Made by a program: the position numbers and the translations under genes. Positions 9,612 to 31,968 of a DNA stretch of 64,000 nt are shown piece by piece (positions within the stretch are counted from its first letter, which is position 1; each line of letters starts with the position of its first letter). Below the pieces are notes generated by a model. That model made no database searches and was not told the DNA's origin. It was given only the letters and a program-made list of their open reading frames with translations. The stretch is from Podarcis vaucheri (lineage: Eukaryota). The stretch lies in NCBI GenBank assembly GCA_965113315.1, contig OZ220370.1, one strand, 5' to 3'.

Positions 9612-10283
9612 CATATGTGCAGATGTAATTTCTGTTGTTGGAATTGTCAGGTCTTATGACTGAATTAATACAATCAATAGTGTACTTATATGGTGCTTTT
9701 TTAAGTGCTCAAATTTCTCAAGATGGAAAATCTCAGCAATAATTACAACAACCCTGTAAAGTAGATCTCTGCTGTTAGCCTTGTGGTGAAGGCAGCGAGG
9801 GATTGGGTGAGTTTGAGTGTTTTCACTTGGATCACCCAGTGTTCTTTTAACCTGGTACTCCCAACGCATCATTCATAAACCCATCATTCACTACACTAGT
9901 TCTCAAATGAGTGTACATTAATTTCAGTTTTTAGATTAAGGAGTTATGGTCAGACAATAATACTATGAACTGGATTTCCTTCTATGGCTGGATTTCCTTC
10001 TTGACCAGTTCAAATAAAACTATTGTCATACCACCCCAGCCACAGAGATCAAAGTGAATTTAGATGCATGGCACCTTCATGACAAGCAGGCAACGCACAT
10101 CAAAATTATGAAAAATAATAATCCTATTAAGCAGATGTGGATGTTATTGTCACGTGAAGGTCCTGGCAAAGAATGTGGAATTGATATGTGTTAGAGAGTT
10201 GTGGGTTGTCTAGCCTCCCAAATAGGAATGTTCTGAAATATTCTATCAACTGTGTACTTCTTAGTTAGCATGGTACAATCTGA

Positions 10284-10469
10284 CATAGGCGCCAACCCCT
10301 AGGGGCAGAGAGGTCTTTAGGACCCCCCCCATAAAATATATGAGGGGGCGGGACTCCAAAGTTTATAGGTATTGCCATTCAGATGGTGTGCATGTGCCGT
10401 GTCCTGTGATCAATTATGTGGGGCGGGGCTTACCTGTCCCCCCATATTTCATTCAAGTTGGCACCCCTG
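10284..10469. mobile_element. hAT-like MITE
   Basis: TIRs CATAGGCGCCAAC / GTTGGCACCCCTG; perfect 8-bp TSD CAATCTGA (10276-10283, 10470-10477). Confidence 0.8.
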
Positions 10470-11686
10470 CAATCTGAGCTGTAACTGACAATCCCCACAA
10501 TGGTCTCCAGCTGCTACTTAGACTTAATTGTACTCAGACCCTGCCCTGAAAATAGCAAAGCAAGTGTAGAAAAATATGAATGTTTCATCATGGGTAACAA
10601 AGGGCAGAAGGAGAGCTTCAAAACCAGGAATGTCCCCGGCCTGTCAGAGATATGCTACCTGTCCAACCAACAAGTTGTCAGCTGGCTTCATGTTTACTGT
10701 CAATTCACACATTATGGAATCAACTCTGGATAATCCTGTGCCGGGTTTATCAGTTTGATTGATTGAGCTAAATCACACGCATATTCTTTTAAAATCAGGA
10801 GCTATGTGGACGGTCACAAGGGGTAACAAGGGCCCCCCTGTTGTAATCTGCCCTGGACCGCCCTCCCCCCTTTTGTAATCTGAGCACTAGGGTTGATTCA
10901 GTGTAAATGTTCAAAGTGTAGAAGTTCATTGGAAATGTATTTGCCAGCCCTTTTGTTACAATACACCTCAAGTTTAACATTTCAATTACATTTGCCTCAG
11001 CTGCGTTGGAAGTTCATCCTGTTACGTCGTAGACTAAAACCTCAGAAAGCAAAATTATGTAACATTGCCCAAATCAGTATGAGGACATTAATTGTCATTC
11101 TGAGGATTTCTCTTGCATAAACATCAAAAACATTGGGTATCAATTTAGAACTGTCTTTGCCCCCCCACCTCCTCCTCCTTTTTAAAAACCAAACTAGAGA
11201 TTTAGCGCAGCTGCTGCCAGCAAAATCATATCTGACCCTGAAAAATACAATTGCCATTCTCCTACTTGGAGAATATTGAAAGTCAGATAAGCAGTAGGGG
11301 TTGAAAAGCACTTCAGGCAGTCCCATTAAAAAGGCACAGGCATACCAAGTGCACACAGTTAACCTTAGAAAAAGAGCAGAGAGAATCAGGTGGTGTACAA
11401 ACAGCAATTGTTGCTACACAGGTTGCAGGGGGAAAAGCTGGGGGAAATCATAGTGAATTACTCGGCAATCAAACATGCTACAGAAAGAGTTAAAGCAGCA
11501 TTCGTTTTTCATGCTGCAAAAATGTACTTCAGATAAGAGAACACTTCATATGGTACACAGAGTGACCCCATTAGGCATAGAAGACAAACACTAGTCCTAT
11601 CAGGAAATTCTGCACCTAAGGAGCTATTGTTCCTGCTATGTGAGCATCTTCAGTTGAGCTTCAGAGTTTAGAAGCAAAGGCTAGTA

Positions 11687-11912
11687 CAGTGGTACCTCGG
11701 GTTACATACTCTTCAGGTTACAGACTCTGCTAACCCAGAAATAATACCTCGGGTTAAGAACTTTGCTTCAGGATGAGAACAGAAATCGTGCTCCGGCGGC
11801 GCAGCAGCAGCAGGAGGCCCCATTAGCTAAAGTGGTGCTTCAGGTTAAGAACAGTTTCAGGTTAAGAACGGACCTCCGCAATGAATTAAGTACTTAACCC
11901 GAGGTACTACTG
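11687..11912. mobile_element. Tc1/mariner (Tigger-like) MITE
   Basis: TIRs CAGTGGTACCTCGGGTTA / TAACCCGAGGTACTACTG with TA on both sides. A second copy in the opposite orientation is at 62071-62309. Confidence 0.9.
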
Positions 11913-13260
11913 TACTGGGAGTTTACACCATTCCTGTTAGCCCAGCAGTTACATCAACTCTGCTGCTCTTGTCCCATGTTATTCACATTCTCTCCCCCCC
12001 CCCCAACATTCTCTGTATGTCTGTCTGTTTATTTATTTATAGTGTTATTTAATTGCTACTCTTCATCCAAAAATATAGCAAAAAGGCTTACAAAGAAAAT
12101 AAAAAATGAATACAATATTTAAAATAATAAAGTGAGTAAAAAACCCCCAATGAAAATCCATAAACTATGATCCCACTCGCTGAATATTTCACTCATCCCT
12201 TGACATATTCCACACCCATTAACACCCTAACTTCAACCAAACTACACCTACAGACGTTTACACTTTTAGACACCCCCCACAAACATTTACTTACTCTCAG
12301 CATTTATCAGTCCCACCAGTCCCCTAGGTATATATACAAGATGTTTACACTACAACACCTAACTACAACACTGTCAGTTTTATACTATGTATTCTAGAAC
12401 TCCACCAACACCAATAAAAACTTCAGCTATTCACCAAAATACTCATTCACATCGGATTATTATCTATGGCTGAGAAACCAAGTTCTTGCCCAGGTGGCCA
12501 CCAGTTTCCTGCTGCTACCTGAAACATCACAATGTAGGAAACTGCCTTATACTGAATCTATTTGGTTTAGCATTGTCCACACAGACTGGCAGTGGGTCTC
12601 CAGGAGTTCAGACTGGAGACATTCACAGCCGTTTCCGAAAATGATACTGTGCAGAAGTTCTACCAGAACTATGGCCTTTCCCCAGCTGAGAGATGGCTGG
12701 ACTCCAAACTCTCCCTTCAATGTCCCCACACTCTCACCCTGAACAACATTGTTCGGAAACATGCACCAGGCTTTGTTGAGGCTGAGATATGGCATTTGCA
12801 AGAATGGAACACAATATAATCTCTCTTTGTACAGCATCAAGTTTATTTCTATTTTTACGAGCTTATTTATGCCTGCACTTTATCTTTCTTAGGAAATTCA
12901 TTTGTATGCTTTTGCTTTCTAGCTCTTCACATCTTCCCCTTTGCATGGCTGAGCTTTGCTGATCACAAGGGCTAAGCAGATTGAAAACACATGTGGCTAC
13001 AGAGCAAATGCTACCTTTGACCTCAAGCTATTTCTCCAAGGGAGCATTAAGTTTTCCTGTTGCCTAAAGAATTTATTTTGCCTGGGGCAAAATGCCTTGA
13101 CATATATCAGGCATGTTTTCATTTCAATTACTTTGTAGAATAGTATGTTCATAACCAGTTTTGTGATGCTTCTGGAAATTTTTAGACGCAGTGCTGTAAT
13201 TTTCCTCCAAACTACAGGCATAATCCTGACTTCTAAGTTGGGACAAAAAGTGAGCCACAA

Positions 13261-13830
13261 TAGAATCATAGAATTGTAGAGCTGGAATGGACCCTGAGAG
13301 TCATCTAGTTCAACCCCCTGCAATGCAGGATTCCCAACTAATGCATTCATGACAGATGGATGCCACCTTGTGAGGGAGTACATTCCACTGTCAGAACGTT
13401 ATTCCTGATGTTTAGTCAGAATCTCCTTTCTTGGTTCAGGTCCTACTCTCTGGGGCAGGAGGAAACAAACTTGCTCCATCTTCCATGTGACCTCCTGGTT
13501 TGGTGTCATCTGCAAATTTGATGAGCGTTCCCTCAATTCCTTTGTCCAAGTCATTTATAGCTTGGGCAAAGGAATTGAACAACAATGGTCCCAGAAAGAA
13601 CCCTGTGGCACCCCACTTGTCACTTTTTTCCAGGATGATGAGGAACCATTAGGTAACCGACTCTTTGGGTTTGGTCAGTCAACCACCTGCAAATCCACCT
13701 AAGTTACCTCATCTAGCCCATATATTACCAGCTTCTCCACAAGAATATCACAGGGGATCCACCAAGCTTGTAAGTCTATCAAAAAAAGAAATGAGATTCA
13801 CCTGGCATGACTTACGTTTGAGAAACCCAG
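13261..13830 (-). mobile_element. CR1 (L3) LINE remnant with internal deletions
   Basis: CR1 3' terminus (TAGAATCATAGAAT on +). The minus strand encodes LIKFADDTK (GGTGTCATCTGCAAATTTGATGAG on +) and a GVPQG-like motif. Confidence 0.85.
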
Positions 13831-14190
13831 GCTAGAAATCACATCTTTCCTCTCTTCATGTGCACCCAAAATCTACTCCAATGTCGTCATCCCCCAACCC
13901 TCTGAAGCAGATTTTGAGGGGGTGAGAGGACTGCAGAAGAAAGGAGAGGAGATAGACCTTCCATTGCACAAGCAGTGCTGGGCCCAGCCTTAAGGATGCA
14001 ACTAGATGTTGGATGCATATTACACAGGAACAGCCACTTCTAGATTTGTAGTTGGCACTGGAGAAATGGAAAGGAAAGGGTGTTCAGCACTTCACCTTCC
14101 TGCCATTTTCAAAGTCTAAATCAGCTGCCTCAAACAACCCACTCACTACCAACATAGGGGCACAATGAAAAAGGAAAGTAGCAGATAAGG

Positions 14191-14292
14191 CTATGTAGAG
14201 GGAAGTTTTTAATGTTTGTTGTTTTATTATTTGTTGGAAGCTGCCCAGGGGCAACCCAGTCAGATGGGCAGGGTACTACTACTACTACTAAT
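14191..14292 (+). mobile_element. L2-clade LINE 3' tail ending in (TAC)n
   Basis: GAAGCTGCCCAG..CCCAGTCAGATGGGCAGGG followed by a tandem tail; same family as 45625-45764. Confidence 0.7.
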
Positions 14293-14799
14293 GTTAGGAT
14301 TGTCCCTTCTGGGGTGGGGGGGAGCCCAGCAGGATAATGTAACACAAATCTGTGTGTAAGGTATAGTTTGGCCTTTATTGTTAAAAATATCATAATTCAG
14401 ATCATGTCAGCTCCTATTTCTAGGTAAAATTCTGACATCAACAGAACATGACAATCTAACATGACAATGCCAGAGTGGCTGTCACAATTTGACAAGCCAG
14501 AATTAAAAGATAGTTATACACACAGGCATCTCCATTCATCTTTCATGGGCTGAACTATAGATCTGAAGGAAATACTTGTACAAAAAAAGGGGCACGGTCT
14601 ACTGGGATGTTCAGTGAAAGCCTCACAGAAATCGATAGGAAGTGCACAAGAGAAGGTTCAGTTCAGTGGGGCCTAATGTGCAAGAGCTTTCCAGAGGATT
14701 ATGTCCAGGTGATGAAGCTCTGTCTGAATGCTTTCAGGATAACGACCCACTTTCTCCACTTTGTTTCCTAGTTTTAGAAGAGGGTTGCATTCCACACTG

Positions 14800-15250
14800 G
14801 CCAGCCAAATGTCCTCAAGCATCTGCACCAGTTGACTATTCGCTTCTGAGCCCAATTCAAGGTGCTTTCATTAACATATGAAGCCCTAAATGACTTAGAC
14901 CCCAATAGACTAGTTTGGAGATTCAGATCACTGGAAGAGAGCCCGTTGGTAGTGCCACCATCCTCAAAAGTTCAGGAGGCAGTGGCTTATCATGACAGGA
15001 ACTTCTCTGTGGTGGCCCCCAAATTGAGAGGCTAACCAGGCACCAGCACTTTGCAGCTTTCATTGGTTACTACCTTTGGAAATGAAGCATTATTTTTTAG
15101 TTATACTCCCTGTAAATTGTTTTATTAATTGTTTATTCTTTTATTGTTGTTGCCATATGCTTTACTGATTATTCATCATTTTGTAATTGTATTTTAGTTA
15201 TAAAGCCCACCCTAGTATCTAAGGATGAAGGGTAAGTAAGAAAGACTAGA
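14800..15250 (+). mobile_element. Old L2-clade LINE 3' region
   Basis: GCCCAATTCAAGGTGCT..AAGCCCTAAATG and TTCTCTGTGGTGGCCCCC motifs typical of L2 ORF2 C-termini. Confidence 0.6.
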
Positions 15251-15874
15251 AATAAATTGAAGCAAATAAATGTCTCTGGGAAGCTGACAAGCAGATCATA
15301 AAGGACTGTGGTTCTCCAGCAGCTGGTATAATTCTCTGGACCTGAACATATAAGCGCCATGGCTAATTGCCACCAACGGCCTTTGCCTTCATGAATTTCT
15401 CTAATCTCTTTTTAAAGCCATCCAACTCTAGTGACCACCAACACACAGCAGAAAATCAAAGAAAAGTCATGACTTCAGTTGTATCAGCTTCTGCACATCT
15501 AGGGAAAGGTTCCATACTCCATTGAAAAGGACCATTTTGAACTTCCTACAATCAATATGAAGCACACAGATTTTGCTATTCATGGATTAATTCTTTCCAG
15601 ATTTTCTACTTTGGTAAATTTAACTGTTGTTCAGTTCACAAGCATTTCACTGAGCAACTCTGAGCAGTCAATCATCTTCAAGTCCATAGGTTGTTTACAA
15701 GCCAATCATTTTGACAGCTCATTGCATGAGTTTCTTCCTCTAAGGGAATTTTTGCAGTATTTGACTACCTTTAATGCTTTTAAATAAATAAAAATCATAG
15801 GTATTCCTCACGATTTCACTACAAACCCACGAACATGAGGTCAAAGAAGCTAGCTCAAGAGGCAGCACAGATTA

Positions 15875-16134
15875 CTGTATTTTTCTCTCTATAAGAGAGC
15901 ACCAGACCACAAGACGCACCTAGTTTTTGGAGGAGGAAAACAAGAAAAAAAATATTCTGAATCTCAGAAGCCAGAACAGCAAGAGGAATTGCTGCGCAAT
16001 GAAAGCAGCAATCCCTCTTGCTGTTCTGGCTTCTGGGATAGCTGCGCAGCCTGTATTCGCTCCATAAGACGCACACACATTTCCCCTTACTTTTTAGGAG
16101 GGAAAAAGTGAGTCTTATAAAGCAAAAACTATGG
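15875..16134. mobile_element. Tc1/mariner-type MITE with a long internal hairpin
   Basis: TIR-like ends CTGTATTTTTCTCTCTATAAGA / TCTTATAAAGCAAAAACTATGG with TA flanks; 35-bp inverted repeat at 15961-16039. Confidence 0.75.
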
Positions 16135-16377
16135 TATATTTCTTAGAGAGGTGCTAGGGTTACCAGGATAACTTTATATCTCTCTTGTTTTATAGGGGAC
16201 CGAGCTACTCCTAGATTCTGAAATCAGAATGAATTATGCAGATCACACAATCCCCATATATAACATTTATTCAGTTTGCATTGTCTGTTCAAGTGGTAAC
16301 TTTTGAATTTGTGCAGAATTCAAAATATATTGGCAAAGAATAGTGCCAACCCTATTCTGTTTTCATCAGATCTCACC

Positions 16378-16554
16378 CAGAGTGCAGTGTCAAGTTCTGG
16401 GCAGCACAGATTAGGATGGATATACTAACAAACTGGGATCCAGAGGAAGAAGAGAATGATTGGAGGGGGCCTGGAGACCAAGCCCTAAAGGAATTGAGTA
16501 TGGTTGGCCTGGACAACAGACCATTAAGATGTGATAGTCATTTATAACTATTTA

Positions 16555-16605
<51 letters not shown>

Positions 16606-17040
16606 TTATTTATACCCTACCCATCTGGCTGGGTTTCCCCAGCTACTCTGGGCAGCTTCCAACAAAACACTAAAATACAATAACCTATGAAACAGTAAAA
16701 GCTTCCCTAAACAGGGCTGCCTTCAGATGTCTTTTAAAAGTTTGGTAGTTATTTTTCTCTTTGACATCTGGTGGGAGGGCATTGAAGCATTGTCACACAG
16801 AAGATGGAATGAATTTGTCTTCCGTTGCTCCAGAGGGTAGGATCAAAAGTGTTCACATTGAAAGAAGAAAGATTTCAACTGAGCATTAGGAAGTTCTTCC
16901 TGAAGGTAAAAACTGTTGACAGTGGGACAGTCAACCTTGGAAGGTGGTGAATTTTCCATTAGAAGCTGGATGGCCATATCTTAGGGAATGCTGAAGGGGT
17001 AGTTTTCCTGCATCAGTAACAGTTTGGGCTAGGTGACCTT
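16378..17040 (+). mobile_element. CR1 LINE 3' remnant interrupted by an L2 tail insertion
   Basis: CR1-like motifs (TGTCAAGTTCTGGGCA; GCTCCAGAGGGTAGGA; CATTAGGAAG..TTCCTGA) occur on both sides of the 16555-16783 insert. Confidence 0.7.
16555..16783 (-). mobile_element. 5'-truncated L2-clade LINE with long (AAT)n tail
   Basis: (AAT)n followed by TTTATACCC..CCCATCTGGCTGGG; same family at 23453, 34800 and 62636. Confidence 0.85.
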
Positions 17041-18483
17041 TTTTTAAAATGTAAAACAAAACAGAGAAATCTTCACAGTTACAGACAAAAAAAAAAATAC
17101 TTGTGTGTGTGTGTGTGTGTTTGTTTGTGCGGAGAGAGAGAGAGAGGGACAGACAGACAGGGAAGAAAATGTTACACGTAAGAACATCAACTGCACCAAG
17201 GACTAAAGGCCAGATAATTGTAGGGATTGTCTGAAGCAAACAAGTAGGAGCTCAAATATTTCCATATGAAGTAATATTTAGGAGGAATAAGGTTCTTTGC
17301 AGGCTGATTGTTAATATGGAGTATAAAAGTCAACCAAATGTCTGGTCCTGCTTCACTTCCTTCAGATGGTGGGTAGCTATATGTAAAGCTCTCTTAAACC
17401 AGTTATCCAATGTAAAAGCTGCAGCGTCCTTCTACCCTCGGCCTCCACCAACCTAGCAGCCACTAACAGATAGACTACCAATGACTTTAGTACAATGGCT
17501 GAGTTAGGTGGACTAGTTCACCTTCTGATCAGGAGTGCCAACTTGGCCCCGCAACCATGGGTGCCCAGGGCTGTGGGTGCTATGCAGTGTGCATGGCCCT
17601 GGCACTAAAATTTGTGGGTGCCTGGCCCCTTCATGGGGAATTTTGTGAGTGCTCAGGCACCCAGGGCCCCAGGGATTTGGCACCTACGCACCTAATATAC
17701 TTTTCTGGCTGAGGAAGAATACCAAATGATGTAATAAATTGTTGTGTGGAGTGAAGCACCAAAACAAGGGATGTAAGAAGACATTGACTTCTCTTCCACC
17801 CCATATTTGTTGCATGCAGCACTGGTTCTGTTCCACTACAGTTCAGCTTTTGACAAGAAAATTATTCATTTTGCTCTCCGCTATGGCAGAATTTTCATGG
17901 TTAAAGGGGACAGCAGTGCCACAGAGAATGTGCAAGAGTTCTTCTGAGGGAGGGAGAAAGGCATTGCTGGTCCATAAAGGGAAATGAGGCAGCAGCAGGA
18001 CTCAAGTTTCCTCACAGAACATGAGCCCCCTCCCTTCTCCTCCCCCTCCCTTATGAAATCTCTCACTCTCTGCTCTGCCTGCCTGCTTGCTTGGGGTCTG
18101 TATCACTGTGGTATCACCCCAATCCTATCCTTTTTACTCAAAAGGAAAATCCCACTGTATTCAAGGAGCACACTCTCTTGCGTGCATAGGATTTTAGTCC
18201 TGGAGAGTTCCTACATGGTGCCTGGCATTAACTCCACCCATTGCTAGGCGGCATGTAGGATCTTAAGTGACCCTCTGCTTAACCAGCCCCAACTGGCACC
18301 AGCTTCCACTGGAGAAACGCATTCAATAAATCTTCTATTATGGACACAGGAAGCTTTGCCTACCAGCATTGTTGTCCAAACTTTTACCAGTTTTGACGCA
18401 GATGCACAAACTCTGAAGGCTAGAGAAGCAATGACATGAAGAAGCACTTACAAATATGCACTTGCTACAGTATAAAGCTAGTT

Positions 18484-18643
18484 ACAGGTAGGTAGCGGTG
18501 TTGGTCTGCCGTAGTTGAAACAAAATAATAACAAAAGAATTCCTTCCAGTAGCACCTTAGAGACCAACTAAATTTTTTATTGGTTATGAGCTTTCGTGTG
18601 CATGCACACTTCTTCAGATATACTTCTGGAAGGATTTTTTTTT
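18484..18643 (-). mobile_element. Penelope-like element terminal fragment
   Basis: GTAGCACCTTAGAGACCAAC..GAGCTTTCGTG motif, short inverted piece (CTGGAAGGA), and a 15-bp TSD AGTATAAAGCTAGTT (18469-18483, 18644-18658). Confidence 0.8.
18585..18620 (-). ncRNA. Minimal hammerhead ribozyme core (Penelope-associated)
   Basis: Minus strand reads UAU-CUGAAGA-A-GUGUGCAUGCACAC-GAAA-GCUC-AUA: CUGAnGA and GAAA cores, palindromic stem II, UC cleavage site, short stem I. Confidence 0.7.
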
Positions 18644-18721
18644 AGTATAAAGCTAGTTCACTTTAAGCCACCAAGAAGTCCACTGAAGAAGTCAACAAAT
18701 GTTGCCTTCGCACATAGATAA

Positions 18722-19009
18722 TGTTAATTACTGAGCTGAATAGGATCCAAAATGCAGCAGTCTGATTGGTCCTAAAACAACAGGATTCAGAATGCAGCAG
18801 TCTGATTGGTCCGCAGGAGCCACCCAATCCAGCTCCAGGTGGAAGTCTGATTGGCCTACAGGAGAATCCCGGAATTAGCCAATCACGTGCAGCCCATTGT
18901 GTAAATAATGTATATAAAGCAGATATTGTGGGGGGAACTTCCATTTCCTCCTCACCACTTGAGCTGAATAAAGAGCATGAAATCCACTCTCGACTTTGAG
19001 TATATTTCA
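18722..19009 (+). mobile_element. Solo LTR (288 bp)
   Basis: TG..CA ends, 5-bp TSD GATAA (18717-18721, 19010-19014), TATATAAA at 18911-18918, AATAAA at 18967-18972, five CCAAT/ATTGG boxes. Confidence 0.85.
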
Positions 19010-20044
19010 GATAATAGTCATAGGACTTGGCTCTCCAACTATGAGGAATACTTTTCATGTGACAAAATAAGCTGTCTGTGGTTAAGTGCCTGCCATATAA
19101 ATCCACTACTACATAGTTAACCTTGATGACAAGTGTGTATCAGAGCTTCTTTTTTATTGCTTTGTTACACACAGCTGAAAACACTATGTTTGGCAATACG
19201 AGAAACGTTTAATACATTTTGAAACTTTCAGGCAGATTTTCCTCTTTGTTTCCCTGCAGTATAAGCCAAATTATGCAAAACGAGAGCCTGATTTTTGCAG
19301 CTTTTGTACAAGTGAGTAATCTCTCTTATTTGATGCTAGGCAAGTCTGAACTGGGCCCAGAGTAGTGACTCGGAAGAAGCTGAATTAAATTGGTAGCCTG
19401 GGGTGTTCCAATTATTCAGCTGACTTTAGGGAACCTGGTACCAGATTTCTATATTAAAAGGTGAGGATCTCACCTGTGTAAATAATGAAGGGAGCGATTA
19501 AATTTCGTTCCAGCAGAGACCTTGCCACTCAGAGATCTTGTTAATGGCAGTTGAACTGGTAAATAATTAATCAAAGTCCACAGTGAATAAATATATACTT
19601 CCACCCACACAACTTCATCCATGTCCCAAGGACCCAAGCAAGGAGTTTCTTCTTCTTCTTCTTCTGAACAGCCTGAGATTATTAAATTATTCAGGAGCTT
19701 TTCTCCTGGTTGCAATAGGATGTGTAACTTTAAACTGCCTCAGAAAGCTTCTTGCTCCAGATAAAAAAAATATGTTGGTCATTCACAGAACTCCTCCATC
19801 TCTCAAAAATCTGGTGGGGATCCATGAAGCACTGCTCCCTCCAAAGCGCAACCTTTGCTACTGAAATACTGGAAAAGAGTGAGCAATCGACTCGCTCACT
19901 CCTGATTTCCTTCAGCGGAAGGAGCATTAGAATGTGTCTTACGCCATGAAGAGCTTCACAGTCATCAAACTCAGGTTTATGTGGCAACTTTGACCACTCA
20001 CTGCTGCATATATGCAACTGAAGTTTGCAGGATCTTAAGCTTAA

Positions 20045-20325
20045 TCCCCTTCATGGATCACTGCGTTGTCGTGGCGAAGGGTCTTGAATAACTCGGAGAA
20101 GCTATGAGCTATGCTGTGCAGGGCCACCCAAGATGGACAGGTCATAGCCAAGAGTTTAGACTACCTGGAGAAGGAACTGGCAAACCACTCCAGTATTTTG
20201 CCAAGGAAACTCCATGGACATAAAAAAGGAGAAGCTCTGAGAAGAAAGTGAGGGTTTCCAAGGCATCCTCTGGTTCATGGGGTCACGGAGAGTCGAACAC
20301 GACTAAGACGAATAAACAACAACAA
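20045..20325 (+). mobile_element. Bipartite BovB-derived short element (5' UTR joined to 3' end)
   Basis: BovB-type 5' sequence (GGATCACTGC.TTGTCGTGGCGAAGGG..GGAGAAGGAA.TGGCAAACCACTCCAGTAT) joined through a short spacer to a BovB 3' end (CATGGGGTCACG.AGAGTCG.ACACGACT..(AAC)n) matching 49377-49430. Confidence 0.75.
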
Positions 20326-20327
20326 GC

Positions 20328-20500
20328 ACAGAACATAGGACTCAGACCATTCGTTCATCTAGTTCAGTATTGGTAGCACTGACCAACAGTGATTCTCCAG
20401 GGGTTTCAGAGAGGGATATTGTCCAGCTTTACCAGGAGATGCCAGGGACTGAACTCAGAACCTTTTGCATAGAAATCAGATGCTCTGCCACTGAGCCTTC
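20328..20500 (-). mobile_element. Old tRNA-derived SINE
   Basis: Minus-strand head AGGCTCAGTGGCAGAGCATCTG..GGTTCTGAGTTCAGTCCCTGGCATCTCC. Related copies near 12533-12684, 37304-37578 and 47631-47790. Confidence 0.6.
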
Positions 20501-22342
20501 AACATGTAGGGTTCATGGAGAAAAGAAACAGTTCTTGCTAAGAGCAGCCACTTCTGCCACTGTGTTCCTTCTGCTGGAAACTAACTGTACTAGTGCAAAG
20601 AACAATGCACAACATTCAGGATATCATTTGCATCAGCATACCAGTAGGCTAGCAGCAATGGATGGAAGATGGCCTCTGAGGATGTGATCCTATCCTGTCC
20701 AGCAGGCATGATTTGTGGATATGATTGTTCTCCCACTTAAGAACATTTCTGTGTGATCTTTACTTAACGCCCCATTCTTTGTTGACCCTGCATTGCAATG
20801 GTCAGTGCCAATAAAACTGTGCTAATGGACTACAGAAGTTGGGGAGTGGAGACGGGCATTAATAAGGTTGGAATTTGTAATTAATTTTTCAAGTTAATTA
20901 AAATGTCCAAAAGCACAATAAAACTGCAGGGGAAAAAATCTGGTAAGGGAATGTCAGCCTGTCTGATTAATGCAAGTCAACTGTCTTCTGAGGGTAATAG
21001 TAATAATGATGAGATTATGGATATGGAAGAAGCAGCTAAAGAGATGTGAGATGCATGTGGAATACAAACTGTGTCCTAGTTACTATTTTATGGTGCACAA
21101 TGGATCTTATTAAGGAGGAATAGCAGTAAGAATTACCACTGAATTGCTCCATAAAAGTATTGTGTAATTAACAGTGCTGCACTAGCAGCTGGAGCACTAC
21201 CTCCCATTGATATTCCATATCCTCAATTTACTTTCAGTCTTTAACTAAAAATATGTGGGTTTCCAGTGCAATTGCAGACAGCTTGAAAAATATGCTGCAT
21301 TTCCTACTTAATGATAACACTTGAGCAAAAAAGAGATATGTGCTACAGTACTCATATGGAATATTATGCTCTAGTGTACTAGTCAAACAGTCTGTATTGT
21401 GCACTGAAATCAGTGGGGAATTGTTTCTATTATGTGAGTAGGATCAGGCAAATGATGTGCTCAACAACTCAGCAGTGATGGTCCCACCCCACCCCCTTCA
21501 CAGTTTCCCATCTCAAGATTGCTCTTGTGTCAACTGTGTGCGCCCTTAGCACTGCTTAGTCACATGGCAAACTTGTCAAGCTGGAGAGGTGATAGAAGTT
21601 GGGGTGATTAATTGCTCCAGAGTCTTATAAGGGTGATCATCCATCCTTAGTCATCATTTTGTGTACTGAGTACAAAGGTAGTGCACGCTTACTTTGTGAA
21701 ATTAGTGACGTACTGAGAGTGGGTCACAACAAGACGAGAGACAAGCTTAACTGGTTATATCTATGGAAGGTAAAAGTTATGTAAGAAAAGACGGGTCCTA
21801 TGAATAGTGATATTGCTAGGCATCCATGAATATGCAACAGTTACATAATGAATTGTGGTTATCTAGGATGAACAGTGTGGGTCCACCACACTGGTGAATT
21901 CTTTTATGCTATGTCCATTAGAGATCTTTTGTTCTGGGCTCCAGGCAAAACACTTACACACATGAAATACCATTGCATCATAATGCATGCTTTGATACTC
22001 ATAGTTTTGACTATGTACACATTTTTGCATGCTATTTTTCAAACATATTCATTCTGATAAACACTTTCCCCCAATCTATGCATTTTTGCGCCCATTGTTT
22101 TGTTTGGATAAGTGCAAATTTCAAAGGATGGCTGTGTTTTGGTTCTCATATTGTTTCGAAAAGTACAAATTTGTGAAATTTGCCTTTAAATGTGAACTGA
22201 ATTACATTTCTTTCCCATTCCTGGTTCCAGATTATTGGTTATTGGGTTGAAGCCTTAAAGCTTTTATGATAGAGCTAGATACTCTAGGTATATTATTTCC
22301 CAGCTATATATAATATGGGCTCCTACACTTGGTAAAAAAAAA

Positions 22343-24750: not shown

Positions 24751-25561
24751 AAAGTATAGCTGCCATGGAACAGAATGGGGAACCTGCAGCCCTCCAGATG
24801 CTTTGGGACATCTGGCTCTACCAGCATGGTCAATGGTCAAGGATGGGAATTTTAGTCCAGCAACATCTGGAGGCTCAAAAGGCTCTCCACCCCTGTAGTA
24901 AAGCAATAACCACCCAGTGCCACATTCTGGAATTCAGAATCCAAACTGGAGTGGAAAACATTTTCTCTAATACCTATCACTTTTCTCTCTCTCAGTGTCC
25001 TGAACTGTGAGACTTAACATTCCTCTATAGATCTGTAACCACTTGGCTTAACAGAAAGCTTATGTTACAGCTGCACTGTTTTTCTTTTGTTCCTTTAATT
25101 CTAGGGCTGAGCTTAGTGCTTTCATAAAATCATGCCAAACTGGTATAAACAGCTAAAAGGGTGTTTTTAAAACTGTGACTTAAATTGGCTTTTGCGTTTG
25201 AATGTAAAACCTACTTTGGCTAGAATATACATTTGATGTAAAATCTGTTCCAAAGTAGCAAAAGTCCAGAAGGGATTAAAAAGTGTTCTACAGATATGAG
25301 AAAGCAGCATCCATTGTACTGCCCTCAGTTCCTTACCTGCAAAGAATAATTTAGAATAAGATCCTAAATTTAAAATGCCTAATAAAATTATTCATGCAGC
25401 AGATTGCTTTTATTTGCTGTAATTAGATATAATTAAAAAATGATTAGGTGGACTTTGAGGAAGCTAGATTAAACAACACCACTCTTTATTGGAGAAGAAT
25501 TTGGTAAAATGCAGTATTTTCTAATGACATCCATGATGGATAAGCAACCCTGTGCTTACTG

Positions 25562-25815
25562 GAGAGCCAGTATGGTGTAGTGGTTAAGAGCGGTAGTCAC
25601 ATAATCTGGGAAACCGGGTTCGCGTCTCCGCTCCTCCACATGCAGCTGCTGGGTGACCTTGGGCCAGTCACACTTCTGTGAAGTCTCTCAGCCCCACTCA
25701 CCTCACAGAGTGTTTGTTGTGGGGGAGGAAGGGAAAGGAGAATGTTAGCCGCTTTGAGACTCCTGAAGGGGAGTGAAAGGCGGGATATCAAATCCAAACT
25801 CTTCTTCTCTTCTTC
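25562..25815 (+). mobile_element. tRNA-derived SINE, Squam3-like
   Basis: A box TGGTGTAGTGG, B-box-like GGTTCGCGTCT, L2-like 3' end and (CTT)n tail; a near-identical inverted copy is at 32737-32991. Confidence 0.8.
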
Positions 25816-26148
25816 TGTGCTTTTCGAAAATGAATCTGGCCCTACAGGGATTCCATTCAAATGCTTTAAAACCTTCAGTTTTTCTCCCCCAAGCATTTGA
25901 AAGAACACCCAAACATCCTGTTCCTTCTGCTGCCCATTAACCTAAGGGAAAACTCACCTTGTGGTCCAGCACAGAGTAGCAGGTGGTGGAAGCAGCTCCC
26001 TTGAAGATGGGAGAGGCCCACCACCAAACTCCTCCTTTCCCCCCTGACTCTTGCAATATGAAGATGTTGGTGGCATACCAACATGGGCAGAGTTTTGTTG
26101 AGTTTGGAACTTAACAGGTTAAGTTGTTCCCATGATGCCACACCATTC

Positions 26149-26156
26149 TGACGTCA
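26149..26156. promoter_or_regulatory. Palindromic CRE (TGACGTCA) in the LTR
   Basis: Exact motif, also at 29459-29466. Function not shown. Confidence 0.4.
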
Positions 26157-26380
26157 GGTTTCAAAGCTGGGAGGAGTTTGGGAGGAGTGTTTTCAGTTCT
26201 CACTCTATGCTGTGAGGGGAAAGGAAGCAGTTTTGTCATGGCTGCAAGTAGTCCTGGTTTTTCCGGAGATTTGTTGGAATAAACAACTGTAAATAGACAA
26301 ACCTGTACTCTGTGTGTTTGTCAAAGGACGTGATAGCTTTTACCCGCTGTGTAACTCTGCTGGGCGTGACTGGACGACGG

Positions 26381-26462
26381 AGCTAAGTGGCGCAGCTGAG
26401 GGAAGCGTGCCGGACGGCAATAAAGAGCTAAAGCTAATTGTGGATCGTAAATCAATTAGCGA
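26381..26462 (+). ncRNA. tRNA-iMet-like module inside the LTR (copy at 29691-29772)
   Basis: AGCtaAGTGGCGCAGC[tgag]GGAAGCGTGCcGGaC compared with vertebrate tRNAiMet AGCAGAGTGGCGCAGCGGAAGCGTGCTGGGC (recalled sequence); T-loop-like GGATCGTAA versus GGATCGAAA. Not a functional tRNA, because the anticodon arm is replaced. Confidence 0.7.
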
Positions 26463-26494
26463 GGGTCACGCCAAACAATCAATCAATTTCTACA

Positions 26495-26503
26495 GGTTAT
26501 GGG
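26495..26503 (+). promoter_or_regulatory. Primer-binding site, half-tRNAiMet type
   Basis: GGTTATGGG directly after the LTR is complementary to CCCATAACC in the tRNAiMet anticodon arm, as in Drosophila copia-type elements. Confidence 0.85.
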
Positions 26504-26746
26504 TAACCTTAATCACCGATCGTAAAGCTGTCACTGGAGGCTGCTGAAAGCTTTGATCTGCGGTGAAGAGCAGAGAAGCATGGCAGGAGGCGGAGGCCGG
26601 AATCTGAGGCAAGCGGCTAGTTGAAAGACACAGAGGTTTGCCTGTGTTGCTGCGGAGCTGAGAGCAGCAGGGAATCGTTTCTCCACGCCAGAGGAGCTGG
26701 TGATTTTGTGAGTACAGCTTGGGGCGTCTTGGGAGAACGGGAGAAC

Positions 26747-29122
26747 ATGACAGATGGCCAGGAGGTGTTTCAAGCTCCGTTTGAACAGCTTGAGGAACTC
26801 ACCGCCCAAGCGTGGAATACCTGGGCAAGAAGGGTGAGAGCGTGGTTTTTAGCCACGGAAGTGTGGGACATTTCCCAGAGGGAACCAGTGCAACTGGTGG
26901 ACAGAGATGTCAGAGATGCAGAGACACTGCAATCTGCTTCTCTGGAGGAGAAAATGCAGAGGGAGAAAGCTATGAGAGCTGAGATCTGCATGTTGCGGGC
27001 AGGTGTGCACGCCAAGTTGCAACAGCACCTGGAGAGCGTTGAATCTGCGTGTGAGGCCTGGAGAGTGCTGAAACGTCTGTGTGAAGACTCAGCAGGAGGC
27101 CAAGGGCAGATGGAAGTTGAAAGCCTAGAGATGGCTGGAGCCCCTGTTCCTGATGATTTAGCCTCAAGGAGTGCTAGTGAGCAAGTCGGGGGGGCGGAGA
27201 ATTCCAAAGGCAAGTTTGAAAAGTTTTCCACTGTGCGTGCTGGAGTGGAGTTCAGAGGGGGCGGATCTGGCAAGGAGTGCTTTTCCGGAAGAAGGAGGGC
27301 CAGGCCAGCTGAAAAGAGCCCCAGGCAGTGTTTTTCCACTGGAGTTCGTCGTTGCTACGTGTGTAATGCAACGGGACATCTGCGTCGAGATTGCCCCCAC
27401 CGGAGCAGAGAGGCAAGACAGGATGTTGTCAAGGCCAACTCCCATGGGAACCAGTCGGGTTTCCATGGCAACCAGCCTGGGAGAGCAGCCAGGCGTGGGA
27501 CTGAGTCAGGTGGACGTGACCACAAGGAGGAGACGTATCAGATCACGGCTAGTCTAGCTTTGTCTGAAGACAGCTGTGGGACAGGCTCAGAGCTTTGTTT
27601 TGTTTTAGACTCTGCAGCAAACTGCAATTTGATTCCAGAGGAACCTGCTGTCGAGAGGTGGAATTGCAAGGCAATTCCTGCTGGGAAGACTGTACTTTTC
27701 GCAAATGGACAGAAAAGAAATGTGACTAATGCTGTAAATGTGCATTTTTCTGTTTTACAGGAGACGTTGGAGTGTTGTACCGTTCCTGGGATGCACCACT
27801 GTCTTTTATCTGTGCCTTATTTGTTAAAAAAGGGGTTCAAGGTTTGTTTCGAAGATGCTGTCTGCACAATCTCCAAAGGAGGGAGGATGCTTGCCAAGGT
27901 TAAAAAGGGGCAGAATGATCTCTTTATTCTTAAATCACCTCTGGAGGGTGAGGGGAAGGTTGGGAAAGCACAGGCTCTACGTGCTGAAATCAAAAGTCAT
28001 GAGTCATGTGTACATGCTTGGCATGCACGAACAGCTCATGGTTCTCTAGAAGAACTGCAGGTGCTGCCTGAGGTTTCCAAAGGTTGTCAAATCTCAGAAT
28101 GTGGATATGCTGTGAATTGTGAAACTTGCAAACTGGCAAAGGTAAAGGGATGCAGTTATCCAAAAGTAGAGAGGGTAACCACAAGACCTTTTGAAATAAT
28201 CCACATAGATTTGTGGGGTCCTGTAAGGGAACCAAGTCTGGGAGGGTCAAGGTTTCTGCTGATGGTGCAGGATGATTTTACGCAGAATACCTGGACTCTT
28301 GGTCTCAAATCCAAGGATGATGCAGCACAGCTGATCAAAGGGTGGATTGAGGAGGTGGAACTCAGGTTCTCCACCAGGGTGCAAGCAGTCACCAGTGACA
28401 GAGGAGCTCAGTTTACAGGGTCTGCTTTGCAGAAGTTCTTTCACAAGAAAGGGATACGTCACACAGTGACTTCACCCAATCAGAGGGGAGTGTCAGAGCT
28501 CAGGTGTCAGGCTCTGGTTAAAACTGCACAGGTGTTGCTGAAAGATTCTGGGTTACCTCCAAGGTTTTGGCTGGAGGCAATCAAGTATGTGAGCTTCACC
28601 TGGAATCGTACCTACAATTCAATGGTAGGTGACACACCGTTTGGGTTGTTGCATGGCAGGAAACCCCGGATTCATTTTTTGCGTATGTTTGGGTCAGGTG
28701 CATCTGTGCCAGTACCTACTGCTTTGCAGGGGCCAGATGGATCCAAGTTCCGGAAAATGATCTTCTGCGGGTATGAGCCAGAAGCACGTGCATGGAGGTT
28801 TGCATTTCCATCAGGTGATCAGAGTAAGCTACTGATCAGTAAACACGCTGAGTTCTATGAGCAGGATAAAAGGTCAAAAACTGCTGTCATGCGTGATGTG
28901 CTCTCAGAATGTCTATCTGATTCTGAGGAGGAAAGGGAGGCAGAGGCTGATCCCGGTGATGAGGGCCAGGTCCAAGATCAGGATTCAGAATCCGATGATG
29001 ACGATCAGGTAACTGACCAAAGTCAGGAACAGGAGGAGGTATCTGTAGTTTCTCCACAAGATGTTAAGAGAACACCCAAAAGCGAGCCCAGTTCTCCTGT
29101 GAGTGTAATGGAGAGGATTTGA
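26747..29122 (+). CDS. Copia-like Gag-protease-integrase polyprotein without RT (791 aa from the first in-frame ATG)
   Basis: Gag N-terminal W..W..R..A motif and A.EAW..L motif; CCHC knuckle CYVCNATGHLRRDC (27353-27394); protease-like FVLDSAA (D at 27608); HHCC WHARTAH..CETC; integrase IHIDLWGP / TSDRG / GVSE; FGS..IFCGY C-terminal domain. Confidence 0.9.
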   Translation: MTDGQEVFQAPFEQLEELTAQAWNTWARRVRAWFLATEVWDISQREPVQLVDRDVRDAETLQSASLEEKMQREKAMRAEICMLRAGVHAKLQQHLESVESACEAWRVLKRLCEDSAGGQGQMEVESLEMAGAPVPDDLASRSASEQVGGAENSKGKFEKFSTVRAGVEFRGGGSGKECFSGRRRARPAEKSPRQCFSTGVRRCYVCNATGHLRRDCPHRSREARQDVVKANSHGNQSGFHGNQPGRAARRGTESGGRDHKEETYQITASLALSEDSCGTGSELCFVLDSAANCNLIPEEPAVERWNCKAIPAGKTVLFANGQKRNVTNAVNVHFSVLQETLECCTVPGMHHCLLSVPYLLKKGFKVCFEDAVCTISKGGRMLAKVKKGQNDLFILKSPLEGEGKVGKAQALRAEIKSHESCVHAWHARTAHGSLEELQVLPEVSKGCQISECGYAVNCETCKLAKVKGCSYPKVERVTTRPFEIIHIDLWGPVREPSLGGSRFLLMVQDDFTQNTWTLGLKSKDDAAQLIKGWIEEVELRFSTRVQAVTSDRGAQFTGSALQKFFHKKGIRHTVTSPNQRGVSELRCQALVKTAQVLLKDSGLPPRFWLEAIKYVSFTWNRTYNSMVGDTPFGLLHGRKPRIHFLRMFGSGASVPVPTALQGPDGSKFRKMIFCGYEPEARAWRFAFPSGDQSKLLISKHAEFYEQDKRSKTAVMRDVLSECLSDSEEEREAEADPGDEGQVQDQDSESDDDDQVTDQSQEQEEVSVVSPQDVKRTPKSEPSSPVSVMERI

Positions 29123-29461
29123 AAACGCTTTAAGTCAGAGGGGGAATCCTGTAATGCAGAGGACACACCTGCTGGTGATGGGGAAGCATCTGAGTTTGTG
29201 CCCAGAAGGTCTAGTCGCACAACAAAGGGCGTTCCACCTGAAAGATACCAGGCAACAAGTGCGTGGGCAAGATTCGCACAGTGTGATTCTGGGAGTGTTG
29301 AAGGGGTTCAACAGGTGCCTGGGAAAGATGCCGGAAAGAGGCACAAGGCAAAGGGGAAAGTGTTGAACTCAAAAGGGTCTTGTCAGAATGTGCGGCAAGG
29401 GGGGGTGTTGAGTTTGGAACTTAACAGGTTAAGTTGTTCCCATGATGCCACACCATTCTGA
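29123..29461 (+). pseudogene. In-frame continuation of the polyprotein beyond a single TGA
   Basis: The same frame continues KRFKSE..RRSSRTTKGVPPERY (Copia post-integrase RRS.R..P.RY motif) and a degenerate EP.S..E..W..A-like RT leader, then runs through the PPT into the 3' LTR. Confidence 0.7.
29397..29405 (+). promoter_or_regulatory. Polypurine tract
   Basis: AAGGGGGGG immediately 5' of the 3' LTR. Confidence 0.85.
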
Positions 29462-29804
29462 CGTCAGTTTTCGAAGCTGGGAGGAGTTTGGGAGGAGTGT
29501 TTTCAGTTCTCACTCTATGCTGTGAGGGGAAAGGAAGCAGTTTTGTCATGGCTGCAAGTAGTCCTGGTTTTTCCGGAGATTTGTTGGAATAAACAACTGT
29601 AAATAGACAAACCTGTACTCTGTGTGTTTGTCAAAGGACGTGATAGCTTTTACCCGCTGTGTAACTCTGCTGGGCGTGACTGGACGACGGAGCTAAGTGG
29701 CGCAGCTGAGGGAAGCGTGCCGGATGGCAATAAAGAGCTAAAGCTAATTGTGGATCGTAAATCAATTAGCGAGGGTCACGCCAAACAATCAATCAATTTC
29801 TACA
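29406..29804 (+). repeat. 3' LTR
   Basis: Direct repeat of 26096-26494. Confidence 0.97.
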
Positions 29805-31812
29805 AGTTTTCCCATTCCCTGCTGAGATTTGCCCCTGCTGCCAGCATCTTCACTTTACAATGGACAGAGGAAGGCTAGACTTAGTGGACCTCTCTCAACT
29901 TTGTGGCAACCCTTCACCATCCACAGACATCTCTCTGGCTCCAAGGTGAGTTCTTTGCTCATTGCGGGGGCGGGGATGAGGCAGTAAGTAACAATGGGTA
30001 AGTGGAGCACCTTTGCTTTAATTTTCCCAACACCCCTAAATGCTGGCGCTGTCCCATAAGGCTGAAGCTCTCTTTCAAGTCAGTAGAAGCTACTGTACAT
30101 ATTGTAGGATAGTGGCAAGGAAGTTACTGAGTTGTGAAACAAAAAGGCCCTGTTTGCACCTTGTCTTTGATATGAGCTCAGTAAGCTACTATCAGCTTTG
30201 GCTCTACTCTCCACAATAATTTAACAACAGTGACCTACCTCTGACTTAATCAAATTACTAGTCTGTTACAGAATCCCCCCCCCCTTTAAATCTGGTCGGC
30301 AATAACTATCTCCTTATGGAATTGATAGCCTGGCTTTCAGCATTATTATGTTCAGTCACAGCGATACTCATCAGCTTTGTATGAACTACATGTTAATTGC
30401 AAGGCAACAAGATGGTGTTATCCATGAGTAGCTAGCCCAAGAGTGTACAGGGATGTATACTCCCTCCTGCACTGAAACACAGATGGAAATGCACACCCCC
30501 ACCAATGCAAATAAGCGCAGATAGTGACACAAATCTTTACATACATCAGACGTGCATTGTATCTGGAAGCTTTGCCCATGGAAAGCTTACTATTTGCACT
30601 GATCTCTCTTGCTTCTAATGCTTCCCCCTAATGCCCTACTTTAACAAAACCCAGGCAGCTAGAAAACGCAGCAGTGGTGCCGTCCAACAGCAGCACAAGG
30701 CCAAAACAAACACGAGTGACTTGCTGACATCCACTACAATTAAGAACTAAAGAACAGAAATTCGTTGGGGGGGGGGAGTTAAGTGGGACAGTCTTTGGAA
30801 AACATAGCTTTCCCTCTCAATAGTGGGGCATCTGGTGACATTAGTTGAAGTTCTAAAAAAACCTCCCCATGGTCTCTATAAAATGCAGCAATTTTTTAGA
30901 AAAAAGAAACTGTCGTGCATTTGAGTTTGCTTGTTGCCTGGACATGCATGTCCATGTTTGTGTATTAGATATTGTTTAAACAGAACACACCTTTAACGTG
31001 ATGGCTTCTTTCTAGATGGGAAAAGAAAGATGGTGATCAATTTATTTTATTTACAAAGAAATGACTCCATCCTGCCTTCTTTCTTTCTTTCATTATTTAT
31101 TGAGTAAGATAATAGCTTATGGTACATACACGGAGCCAGCTGTTTGCAGGATGCCAAGAGCAGGTGGTCGGGGAGGCCTCTGATGAATTGCAAAAGACAC
31201 TTACCAGCTGCTATCTCTGTGTGAAATGAGCAAACCTGCAAAATCTTTATTTTCAATTGGATTGTACTTTTAAGTAAGCAAGGGAGACAGCCAGTATAAC
31301 TGCAAACCATGACCAACAACAACCCCCAAAAATGTGCAAACACAAGTGATTAGCATACCAGTATTTCAAAATACTGGACGGCTAACAAGCCCATGGTTTG
31401 CAAAGCGAGAGAAAGAGAAAAGGAGGTTTGGGTGTGTGCTGGTTGGTGGGTGGAGGAAGGAGGCATGAGGACGGCAACAGGGAAATGTCTGATGGGCCTT
31501 AATGGCCTTCTGTGGAATCCTAACAATTCCCACACATTCACTTCATCAACCATTCAGACTCCTAAACAACAAAGCTGGGCTTTGAACTTCCTCTTTTGCA
31601 TTTATGTAGGGCACTCTTGTGCGCTGCCTCACCAGGGTGCAATCCTTTGGTGATCACCACAGCCTCAAATGGTCACTGATGAGATGCAGGGATAATGGGT
31701 TACAAAGACAGACATTAATAAGGTAAGATAAGAGAGGGGAGGTTTATTAATTTTTCAAGTAAAGTTAGGATGCCCAAGGGCACAGTAAAGCTGCAAAGAA
31801 TCTAGTGAGGAA

Positions 31813-31968
31813 NNNNNNNNNNNNNNNNNNNNNNNNNNNNNNNNNNNNNNNNNNNNNNNNNNNNNNNNNNNNNNNNNNNNNNNNNNNNNNNNNNNNNNNN
31901 NNNNNNNNNNNNNNNNNNNNNNNNNNNNNNNNNNNNNNNNNNNNNNNNNNNNNNNNNNNNNNNNNNNN
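31813..31968. other. Assembly gap (156 N)
   Basis: Run of n. Confidence 0.99.

Follow-up and report, generated by a model that had tools for sequence, protein, structure and literature searches.

A young Ty1/Copia retrotransposon without reverse transcriptase in a wall lizard, probably from a lineage that lost its polymerase in one old deletion

Within the 64,000-nucleotide stretch of Podarcis vaucheri DNA considered here (contig OZ220370.1 of assembly GCA_965113315.1; this whole stretch is what we call the window), positions 26096-29804 hold a long terminal repeat (LTR) retrotransposon of Copia type, in which the polyprotein frame continues through an integrase and then ends with neither reverse transcriptase (RT) nor RNase H. 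Probably this is a recent insertion of a semi-autonomous Ty1/Copia element, which would have come from a lacertid (Podarcis-type) lineage that lost RT-RNase H in one old deletion. An earlier note on this DNA had already proposed an RT-less lineage that propagates as such, and not a deletion suffered after insertion, and three results now speak for that proposal: a relative in Podarcis muralis, the protein P0004, has the same junction, the reads show the element to be multi-copy, and a precise empty site exists. The features on which the argument leans are the following, with coordinates in the window and strand:

26091..26095, no strand: left target-site duplication (TSD), AGTTT, 5 bp; a single AGTTT stands at the empty site in sequencing run X15
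26096..26494, + strand: 5′ LTR, 399 bp, TG..CA, with AATAAA at 26278 and 26419
26495..26508, + strand: site resembling a primer-binding site (PBS), GGTTATGGG (9 nt), within a 14-nt palindrome, GGTTATGGGTAACC; read from the sequence
26747..29119, + strand: open reading frame (ORF) of 791 codons from the first ATG, with degenerate Gag, CCHC knuckle, altered protease (PR) region, integrase (IN) and acidic linker
27353..27394, + strand: CCHC zinc knuckle of Gag/nucleocapsid (Pfam zf-CCHC, E 2.7e-5)
27605..27622, + strand: protease active-site region, LDSAAN (by sequence alignment; Pfam Pol_BBD undetected)
28013..28141, + strand: integrase N-terminal zinc-binding region, H..H and C..C present (Pfam gag_pre-integrs, weak, E 0.017; alignment)
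28181..28504, + strand: integrase catalytic core, D (HIDLWGP), D (TSDRGAQF), E (GVSELR) (Pfam rve, E 5.7e-11)
28652..28867, + strand: integrase SH3-like C-terminal domain (Pfam SH3_retrovirus, E 4.5e-10)
28865..29119, + strand: acidic, serine-rich linker after the integrase, 78% identical to P0004
29120..29122, + strand: in-frame stop TGA, peculiar to this copy, with the frame open at that point in P0004 of Podarcis muralis
29123..29290, + strand: conserved tail after the integrase, still in frame, KRFKSEGES...RRSSRTTKGVPPERYQATSAW..FAQCDS, the counterpart of the stretch at the IN-RT boundary in autonomous Copia; 80% identical to P0004
29291..29396, + strand: degenerate RT-leader remnant and deletion junction (by alignment; 49% identical to P0004, with indels)
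29397..29405, + strand: polypurine tract (PPT), AAGGGGGGG, adjoining the 3′ LTR; read from the sequence
29406..29804, + strand: 3′ LTR, 399 bp, identical to the 5′ LTR at 396 of 399 positions
29805..29809, no strand: right TSD, AGTTT

The direct TG..CA LTRs, flanked by a 5-bp TSD as in Ty1/Copia, enclose an internal region of 2911 bp. The LTR pair differs at 3 of 399 positions (0.75%), two of the three in CpG context, and the ratio of observed to expected CpG is 0.44 in the element against 0.26 in the window, a higher value that fits a young insertion; no second copy of the element is present within the 64 kb. The TSD, the LTRs with their three mismatches, the PBS-like site and the PPT had been described in this way in the earlier note, and the sequence at 26091-29809 bears this out. 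The site GGTTATGGG begins immediately 3′ of the 5′ LTR, and it would fit the anticodon-loop side of initiator tRNA-Met. Priming against the anticodon-loop half of that tRNA is the mode given for Drosophila copia and Ty5, as cited through references 37 and 38 of PMC10886601.

With an integrase placed upstream of the RT position, the coding order is that of Copia: gag_pre-integrs, rve and SH3_retrovirus come first and then, in frame, the motif of the IN-RT boundary and a remnant of the RT leader. From the RRSSRTTKGVPPERY motif a single frame reaches the PPT through this degenerate leader, as had been claimed; the in-frame stop at 29120-29122, ahead of the conserved tail, had been passed over, and beyond it the same frame stays open for 94 further codons to the PPT and then into the LTR. 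Homology to the autonomous relatives stops in the alignment near KVLNSKGS, at the start of their RVT_2 domain: the element's ..GKRHKAKGKVLNSKGS aligns with their ..W.EAM.KEL..MK.LGVF.., where RT begins, and the element then goes to the PPT. Neither the 791-codon ORF nor the 94-codon tail has a Pfam match at E<=1 to RVT_2, RVT_1 or RNase H, which upholds the description of an internal region of about 2.9 kb without RT and RNase H, and the remnant at 29291-29396 matches nothing in Pfam. Since RVT_2 and RNase H are missing, the element is a derivative and not an autonomous member of Copia. It retains LTRs, PBS-like site and PPT while an essential replication protein is missing, as non-autonomous LTR elements do, and its 791-codon ORF with integrase domains sets it apart from the TRIM and LARD type, in which the internal region is non-coding.

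The polyprotein that remains is unevenly preserved. The element had been said to keep Gag, protease and integrase, which stands for the integrase and the CCHC knuckle; it is overstated for the Gag capsid and the protease, since neither domain has a Pfam match in the ORF (E<=1), about 70 residues of the capsid domain are missing in alignment with the relatives, the protease triad has changed and a premature stop is present. In the closest relatives Retrotran_gag_2 is matched strongly (E 1e-28 to 1e-38); Pol_BBD is matched as well, at E about 1e-5 in the two nearest of them and at values as low as 1e-21 in relatives further away. Where the element has LDSAAN the autonomous relatives read IDSGA(S/G), so that its triad is DSA and not DSG. 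All three acidic catalytic residues of the integrase are kept, with a gap of 3 residues before the E relative to the relatives.

The evidence for an old loss comes principally from a second copy. An exhaustive HMMER search of 1.84 billion protein cluster representatives returned a single close match, P0004 (XP_077785850.1), an uncharacterised Podarcis muralis protein of 315 amino acids (aa) that is encoded on a 101.8-Mb sequence and is 75% identical to residues 597-791 of the element; a word search with P0004 in the protein collection matched only itself. At the position of the element's stop P0004 has none, and it continues through a tail of the form RRSSR..KGVPPERYQAT..FAQCDS, then across a short stretch, degenerate in sequence, as far as ..RGG, and finally into residues that align with the translated LTR start of the element. 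Judged by its sequence, P0004 is an independent, diverged copy with the same order of integrase, tail, remnant, PPT and LTR. Since the junction is the same although about a quarter of the residues differ, the RT-less state predates the divergence of the two copies.

When these copies are compared (the premature stop of the element being read as X), 81 of 110 residues (74%) are identical in the integrase C-terminus, 28535-28864, which holds the SH3 domain; the corresponding counts are 63 of 81 in the acidic linker, 45 of 56 in the post-integrase tail and 18 of 37 (49%) in the RT-leader remnant. The first three segments pooled reach 77% against the 49% of the remnant (Fisher p = 0.001), and the indels between the two copies, at least four, are all in frame. 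In other words, the integrase end, the linker and the tail have changed more slowly than the RT-leader relic since RT was lost.

As for relatives that still carry a polymerase, none closer than 37% was found among the 1.84 billion representatives; the nearest, P0002 and P0003, are only 37% identical to the element protein. P0003 has 1065 aa, with the beginning of RVT_2, while P0002 represents a 90% cluster that holds Podarcis lilfordi proteins together with the intact ORFs P0158, P0159 and P0161 (1385-1386 aa), near-identical Copia polyproteins on Logan contigs of 4.3-4.8 kb; this cluster suggests an intact autonomous Copia, possibly expressed or active, in Podarcis. P0158 aligns over its full length, to the RNase H end, with P0007 and P0015, two complete polyproteins of autonomous Copia with a full RVT_2. 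In a tree of 46 integrase regions the element groups with P0003 and P0158 (SH-aLRT 99), and that clade nests within a lizard Copia clade with P0007 and a protein of Podarcis lilfordi (SH-aLRT 100); the terminal branch of the element's integrase, 0.93, is 2-2.5 times longer than those of P0158 and P0003 (0.36-0.43). A word search with the whole ORF in 5.8 billion proteins gave one plant match at 27%, the scans of metagenome and viral contigs gave one unrelated match at 24% and otherwise nothing, and a search of a phage collection gave no match.

The post-integrase stretch RRS..NSKGS, which reaches into the remnant, is about 52% identical to P0158 (30 of 58 residues, counted by hand), and the remnant itself about 37% (11 of 30, likewise by hand), which is the level of the whole protein against its nearest relatives. 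This bears on one argument that has to be given up, namely that the RT loss is old because the RT remnant is strongly diverged: as the remnant is no more diverged than the whole protein, its divergence alone fails to date the loss, and it is by the comparison of the two RT-less copies, the element and P0004, that the RT-less state is dated instead.

The reads add copy number and the history of the site. Of the 31-mers sampled from the window, 29-49% occur in runs under 8 organism labels, and four runs were aligned: X15 and X16, as contigs, and X23 and X24, as raw reads of about 1.9 Gb each under two organism labels. Copy number is judged only from the depths of the raw reads, summed over both directions in each bin, and summed contig depths were not used for it. 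In X24 and X23 the depth is about 0.1-3.6 in the four bins that lie entirely in unique flank and about 6-90 over the internal region, lowest in Gag and 28-90 across the integrase and tail. The internal depth is about 5-50 times that of the flank, which points to some 5-50 copies in the family with an identity of at least 90%.

Over 29272-29435 the raw-read depth rises to about 230-280, above the LTR bins and about four times that of the integrase region, and since it also exceeds that of the LTR, the last ~130 bp before the LTR would be common to more elements than the rest. Five X15 contigs match the element from 29273 on, and their upstream codons are those of a diverged homologue (FQVTSAWVG against YQATSAWAR), which points to subfamilies or recombinants with a common 3′ end. 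A loose end in X15 at 29414 leads to a variant with the same TTGTCAGA motif near a variant LTR start. The depth over 29272-29435 could come from a cis-acting segment that the different subfamilies have kept, from recombination among them, or from sequence that the element has in common with the helper.

The site itself is found in both states. Record 1 of the X15 contigs (2679 bp, depth 87) joins 26090 to 29805 and aligns to 25815-26090 and 29805-30315 unbroken, with 5 mismatches and 2 gaps over 787 bp of flank; it is a precise empty site, with one AGTTT, under another organism label. The X16 contigs enter the LTR by 30 nt from both flanks, and there the site is filled. With X15 empty and X16 filled, the insertion is recent and either lineage-specific or polymorphic, and the AGTTT duplication was made on insertion. 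Within X16, the contig of the 5′ junction (25789-26125) has a word depth of 67.5, against 143.8 for the contig of the 3′ flank (29775-30400); this half depth could come from a heterozygous insertion, or from depth noise beside a microsatellite.

The sequence of events could have been as follows. A single old deletion would have removed RT-RNase H from the first RVT_2 residues to just upstream of the PPT and, having no polymerase of its own, the element must have its RNA reverse-transcribed in trans. This would most plausibly happen by packaging and reverse transcription with the Gag-Pol of an autonomous Copia from the same clade of lizards; Ty1/Copia RNA with only the terminal cis sequences can be mobilised by helper proteins in trans, as in mini-Ty1 (PMC4974528). 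The cDNA may then be integrated by the element's own integrase, and the 5-bp duplication would fit a Copia-type integrase, whether its own or that of the helper. The integrase and tail may still be in use, because they evolved more slowly than the RT remnant after RT was lost. Both the use of a helper and a continued function of the protein are inferred.

Several points weigh against the reading of an RT-less lineage mobilised in this way. With neither the Gag capsid nor the protease domain detectable, and with a changed protease triad, the protein may be partly or wholly non-functional. The closest autonomous relative is only 37% identical, so that co-assembly with its Gag is uncertain. P0004 is the only independent copy compared residue by residue, and it is a predicted protein model only. 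Purine-rich partial alignments might account for some of the excess depth over 29272-29435. Finally, among the read differences within the ORF, the 33 with the best support all lie upstream of 28300 (Gag, PR and the N-terminal part of IN) and divide into 11 synonymous and 22 non-synonymous, where about 9 synonymous would be expected under neutrality; from these 33, Gag, PR and N-terminal IN give no clear signal of purifying selection.

On the side of constraint stand the uneven conservation (77% against 49%, p = 0.001) and the in-frame indels relative to P0004, and in 886 codons 1 stop is seen where about 5.8 would be expected under neutrality at a divergence of 5.5% per lineage (P(<=1) = 0.02). 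On our reading of this mixed evidence, the C-terminal half of the integrase and the tail would be constrained, and Gag and protease much less so. A bolder proposal, which we put forward only tentatively and consider possible rather than probable, is that of an active vertebrate Copia with a division of labour, in which RT/RNase H would have been gone for long enough that subfamilies now differ in about a quarter of their residues, its own integrase and tail would be under purifying selection and only the polymerase would be borrowed, from an autonomous Copia 37% identical to it.

Other explanations have to be set against the lineage that lost RT once. In one, an autonomous master would repeatedly yield RT-less copies, dead on arrival, through template switching, and no RT-less lineage would perpetuate itself. 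Deletions during reverse transcription are common in retroelements, the proteins of transposable elements are sparse in protein collections, where a close autonomous master could be missed, and the terminal ~130 bp at the 3′ side, about four times more abundant than the rest, are thereby common to other elements; but between the two copies with the same junction 20-26% of the residues differ in the coding parts and 51% in the remnant, and several indels separate them, which agrees with a single early deletion and later divergence of elements already without RT, and the exhaustive search of representatives gave no RT-bearing protein above 37%. We regard this recurrent origin as very unlikely. 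Still less credible, to the point of being nearly dismissed, is a one-off internal deletion of a full-length Copia after its insertion at this locus: the lack of another copy within the window would agree with it, but P0004 has the same junction at another locus (an identity of 75% excludes that the locus is orthologous), across the junction the read depth shows no break and stays multi-copy, and PPT and reading frame have been left exactly in place.

A further alternative accepts the RT-less lineage and changes either its source of polymerase or the role of its ORF: mobilisation would depend on an RT outside Copia (Gypsy, BEL or an endogenous retrovirus), or the ORF would be kept mainly as an inhibitor or competitor of autonomous elements. 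The 5-bp TSD, the Copia-type integrase, the remnant that can be aligned to the RT leaders of lizard Copia and the presence in the same genus of an autonomous Copia with an intact ORF all argue otherwise, even if the nearest autonomous Copia is just 37% identical, Gag and protease are degenerate, and no helper is tied to the element by LTR ends or PBS, the candidate partners being known as protein only. We hold this alternative to be unlikely. A segmental duplication was rejected because of the TSD and the empty site, and a host-domesticated gene because the element is multi-copy, polymorphic and flanked by LTRs.

Around the insertion some other observations were made. Just upstream, 25500-25827 is a very high-copy repeat (raw-read depth about 10,000-22,000, against about 0.1-3.6 in the unique flank), whose loose-end consensus resembles a tRNA (GTGGTGTAGTGGTTAAGAGC...); after it comes a (TCT)n microsatellite, near 25801-25808. 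The repeat has the look of a squamate tRNA-derived short interspersed element (SINE). Within the LTRs, AGTGGCGCAGC..GGAAGCGTGCC at 26385-26416 and 29695-29726 was taken as a candidate likeness, in the same sense, to the 5′ half of the initiator tRNA-Met of vertebrates, one left unsupported by Rfam and ARAGORN, which gave no match on the element; there is likewise no tRNA gene within the window. A run of 156 N, an assembly gap or masked sequence, occupies 31813-31968.

The semi-autonomous LTR retrotransposon is already known as a kind, and a vertebrate Copia that has kept integrase and lost RT/RNase H is a new form of it: in a limited literature search no vertebrate Copia lineage with integrase but without RT/RNase H was found described, and Repbase-type libraries could hold one. 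The wheat Gypsy elements RLG_Sabrina_SA and RLG_WHAM are abundant, without RT and with an intact GAG-protease ORF, and have co-evolved for millions of years with their partner RLG_Wilma, with little in common beyond LTR ends and PBS (PMC9744471). The lizard element resembles them in being an LTR retrotransposon without RT that still encodes part of the polyprotein, but in these plant Gypsy elements GAG-protease is kept and RT and integrase are gone, whereas in this vertebrate Copia it is the integrase that is best preserved and Gag/protease that is degenerate. BARE2 of barley and Tos17 of rice are active Copia elements without a functional gag, dependent on a partner in trans (PMC9744471, PMC3735527, PMC3977881); they share with the lizard element the Copia superfamily and the lack of one essential protein, with the difference that they lack Gag and keep RT, while here RT/RNase H is lacking and the upstream polyprotein is kept.

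With a mini-Ty1 donor and a helper in yeast (Xu and Boeke 1990, reviewed in PMC4974528), packaging, reverse transcription and integration by proteins supplied in trans have been shown experimentally; mini-Ty1 is engineered, non-coding and without an ORF, in contrast to the natural lineage with an ORF that the lizard element would represent. Within squamates Copia is active, as in the OCA2 insertion of the corn snake, which has RT and RNase H and is related to Anolis Copia-6 (PMC4657000). The autonomous squamate Copia elements (the Podarcis P0158/P0002 family and the corn snake OCA2 insertion) belong to the same superfamily and clade and have the IN-RT boundary motif in common with the lizard element; unlike it, they have RVT_2 and RNase H complete. 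In TR-GAG elements only Gag is encoded. TRIM and LARD are non-coding LTR-PBS-PPT shells mobilised in trans (PMC10886601). TRIM, LARD and TR-GAG share such a shell with the lizard element, which differs from them in encoding a protein of 791 residues with a Gag remnant, a PR-like region and an integrase.

Partly coding non-autonomous LTR elements that co-evolve with a helper have been documented mainly in large plant genomes, and the element described here would extend the same strategy to a vertebrate Copia that is still inserting in genomes of wall-lizard type, with the unusual feature that the retained part is the integrase and not Gag. If true, the division of labour between its own integrase and a borrowed polymerase would make it an integrase-carrying "coding satellite", a kind that, in a limited literature search, was not found described among LTR retrotransposons. 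It would offer a natural system in which to see which retroelement proteins have to work on the RNA that encodes them and which may come from elsewhere, what distance a parasite can put between itself and its helper, and what share Copia may have in the structural variation among closely related lizards.

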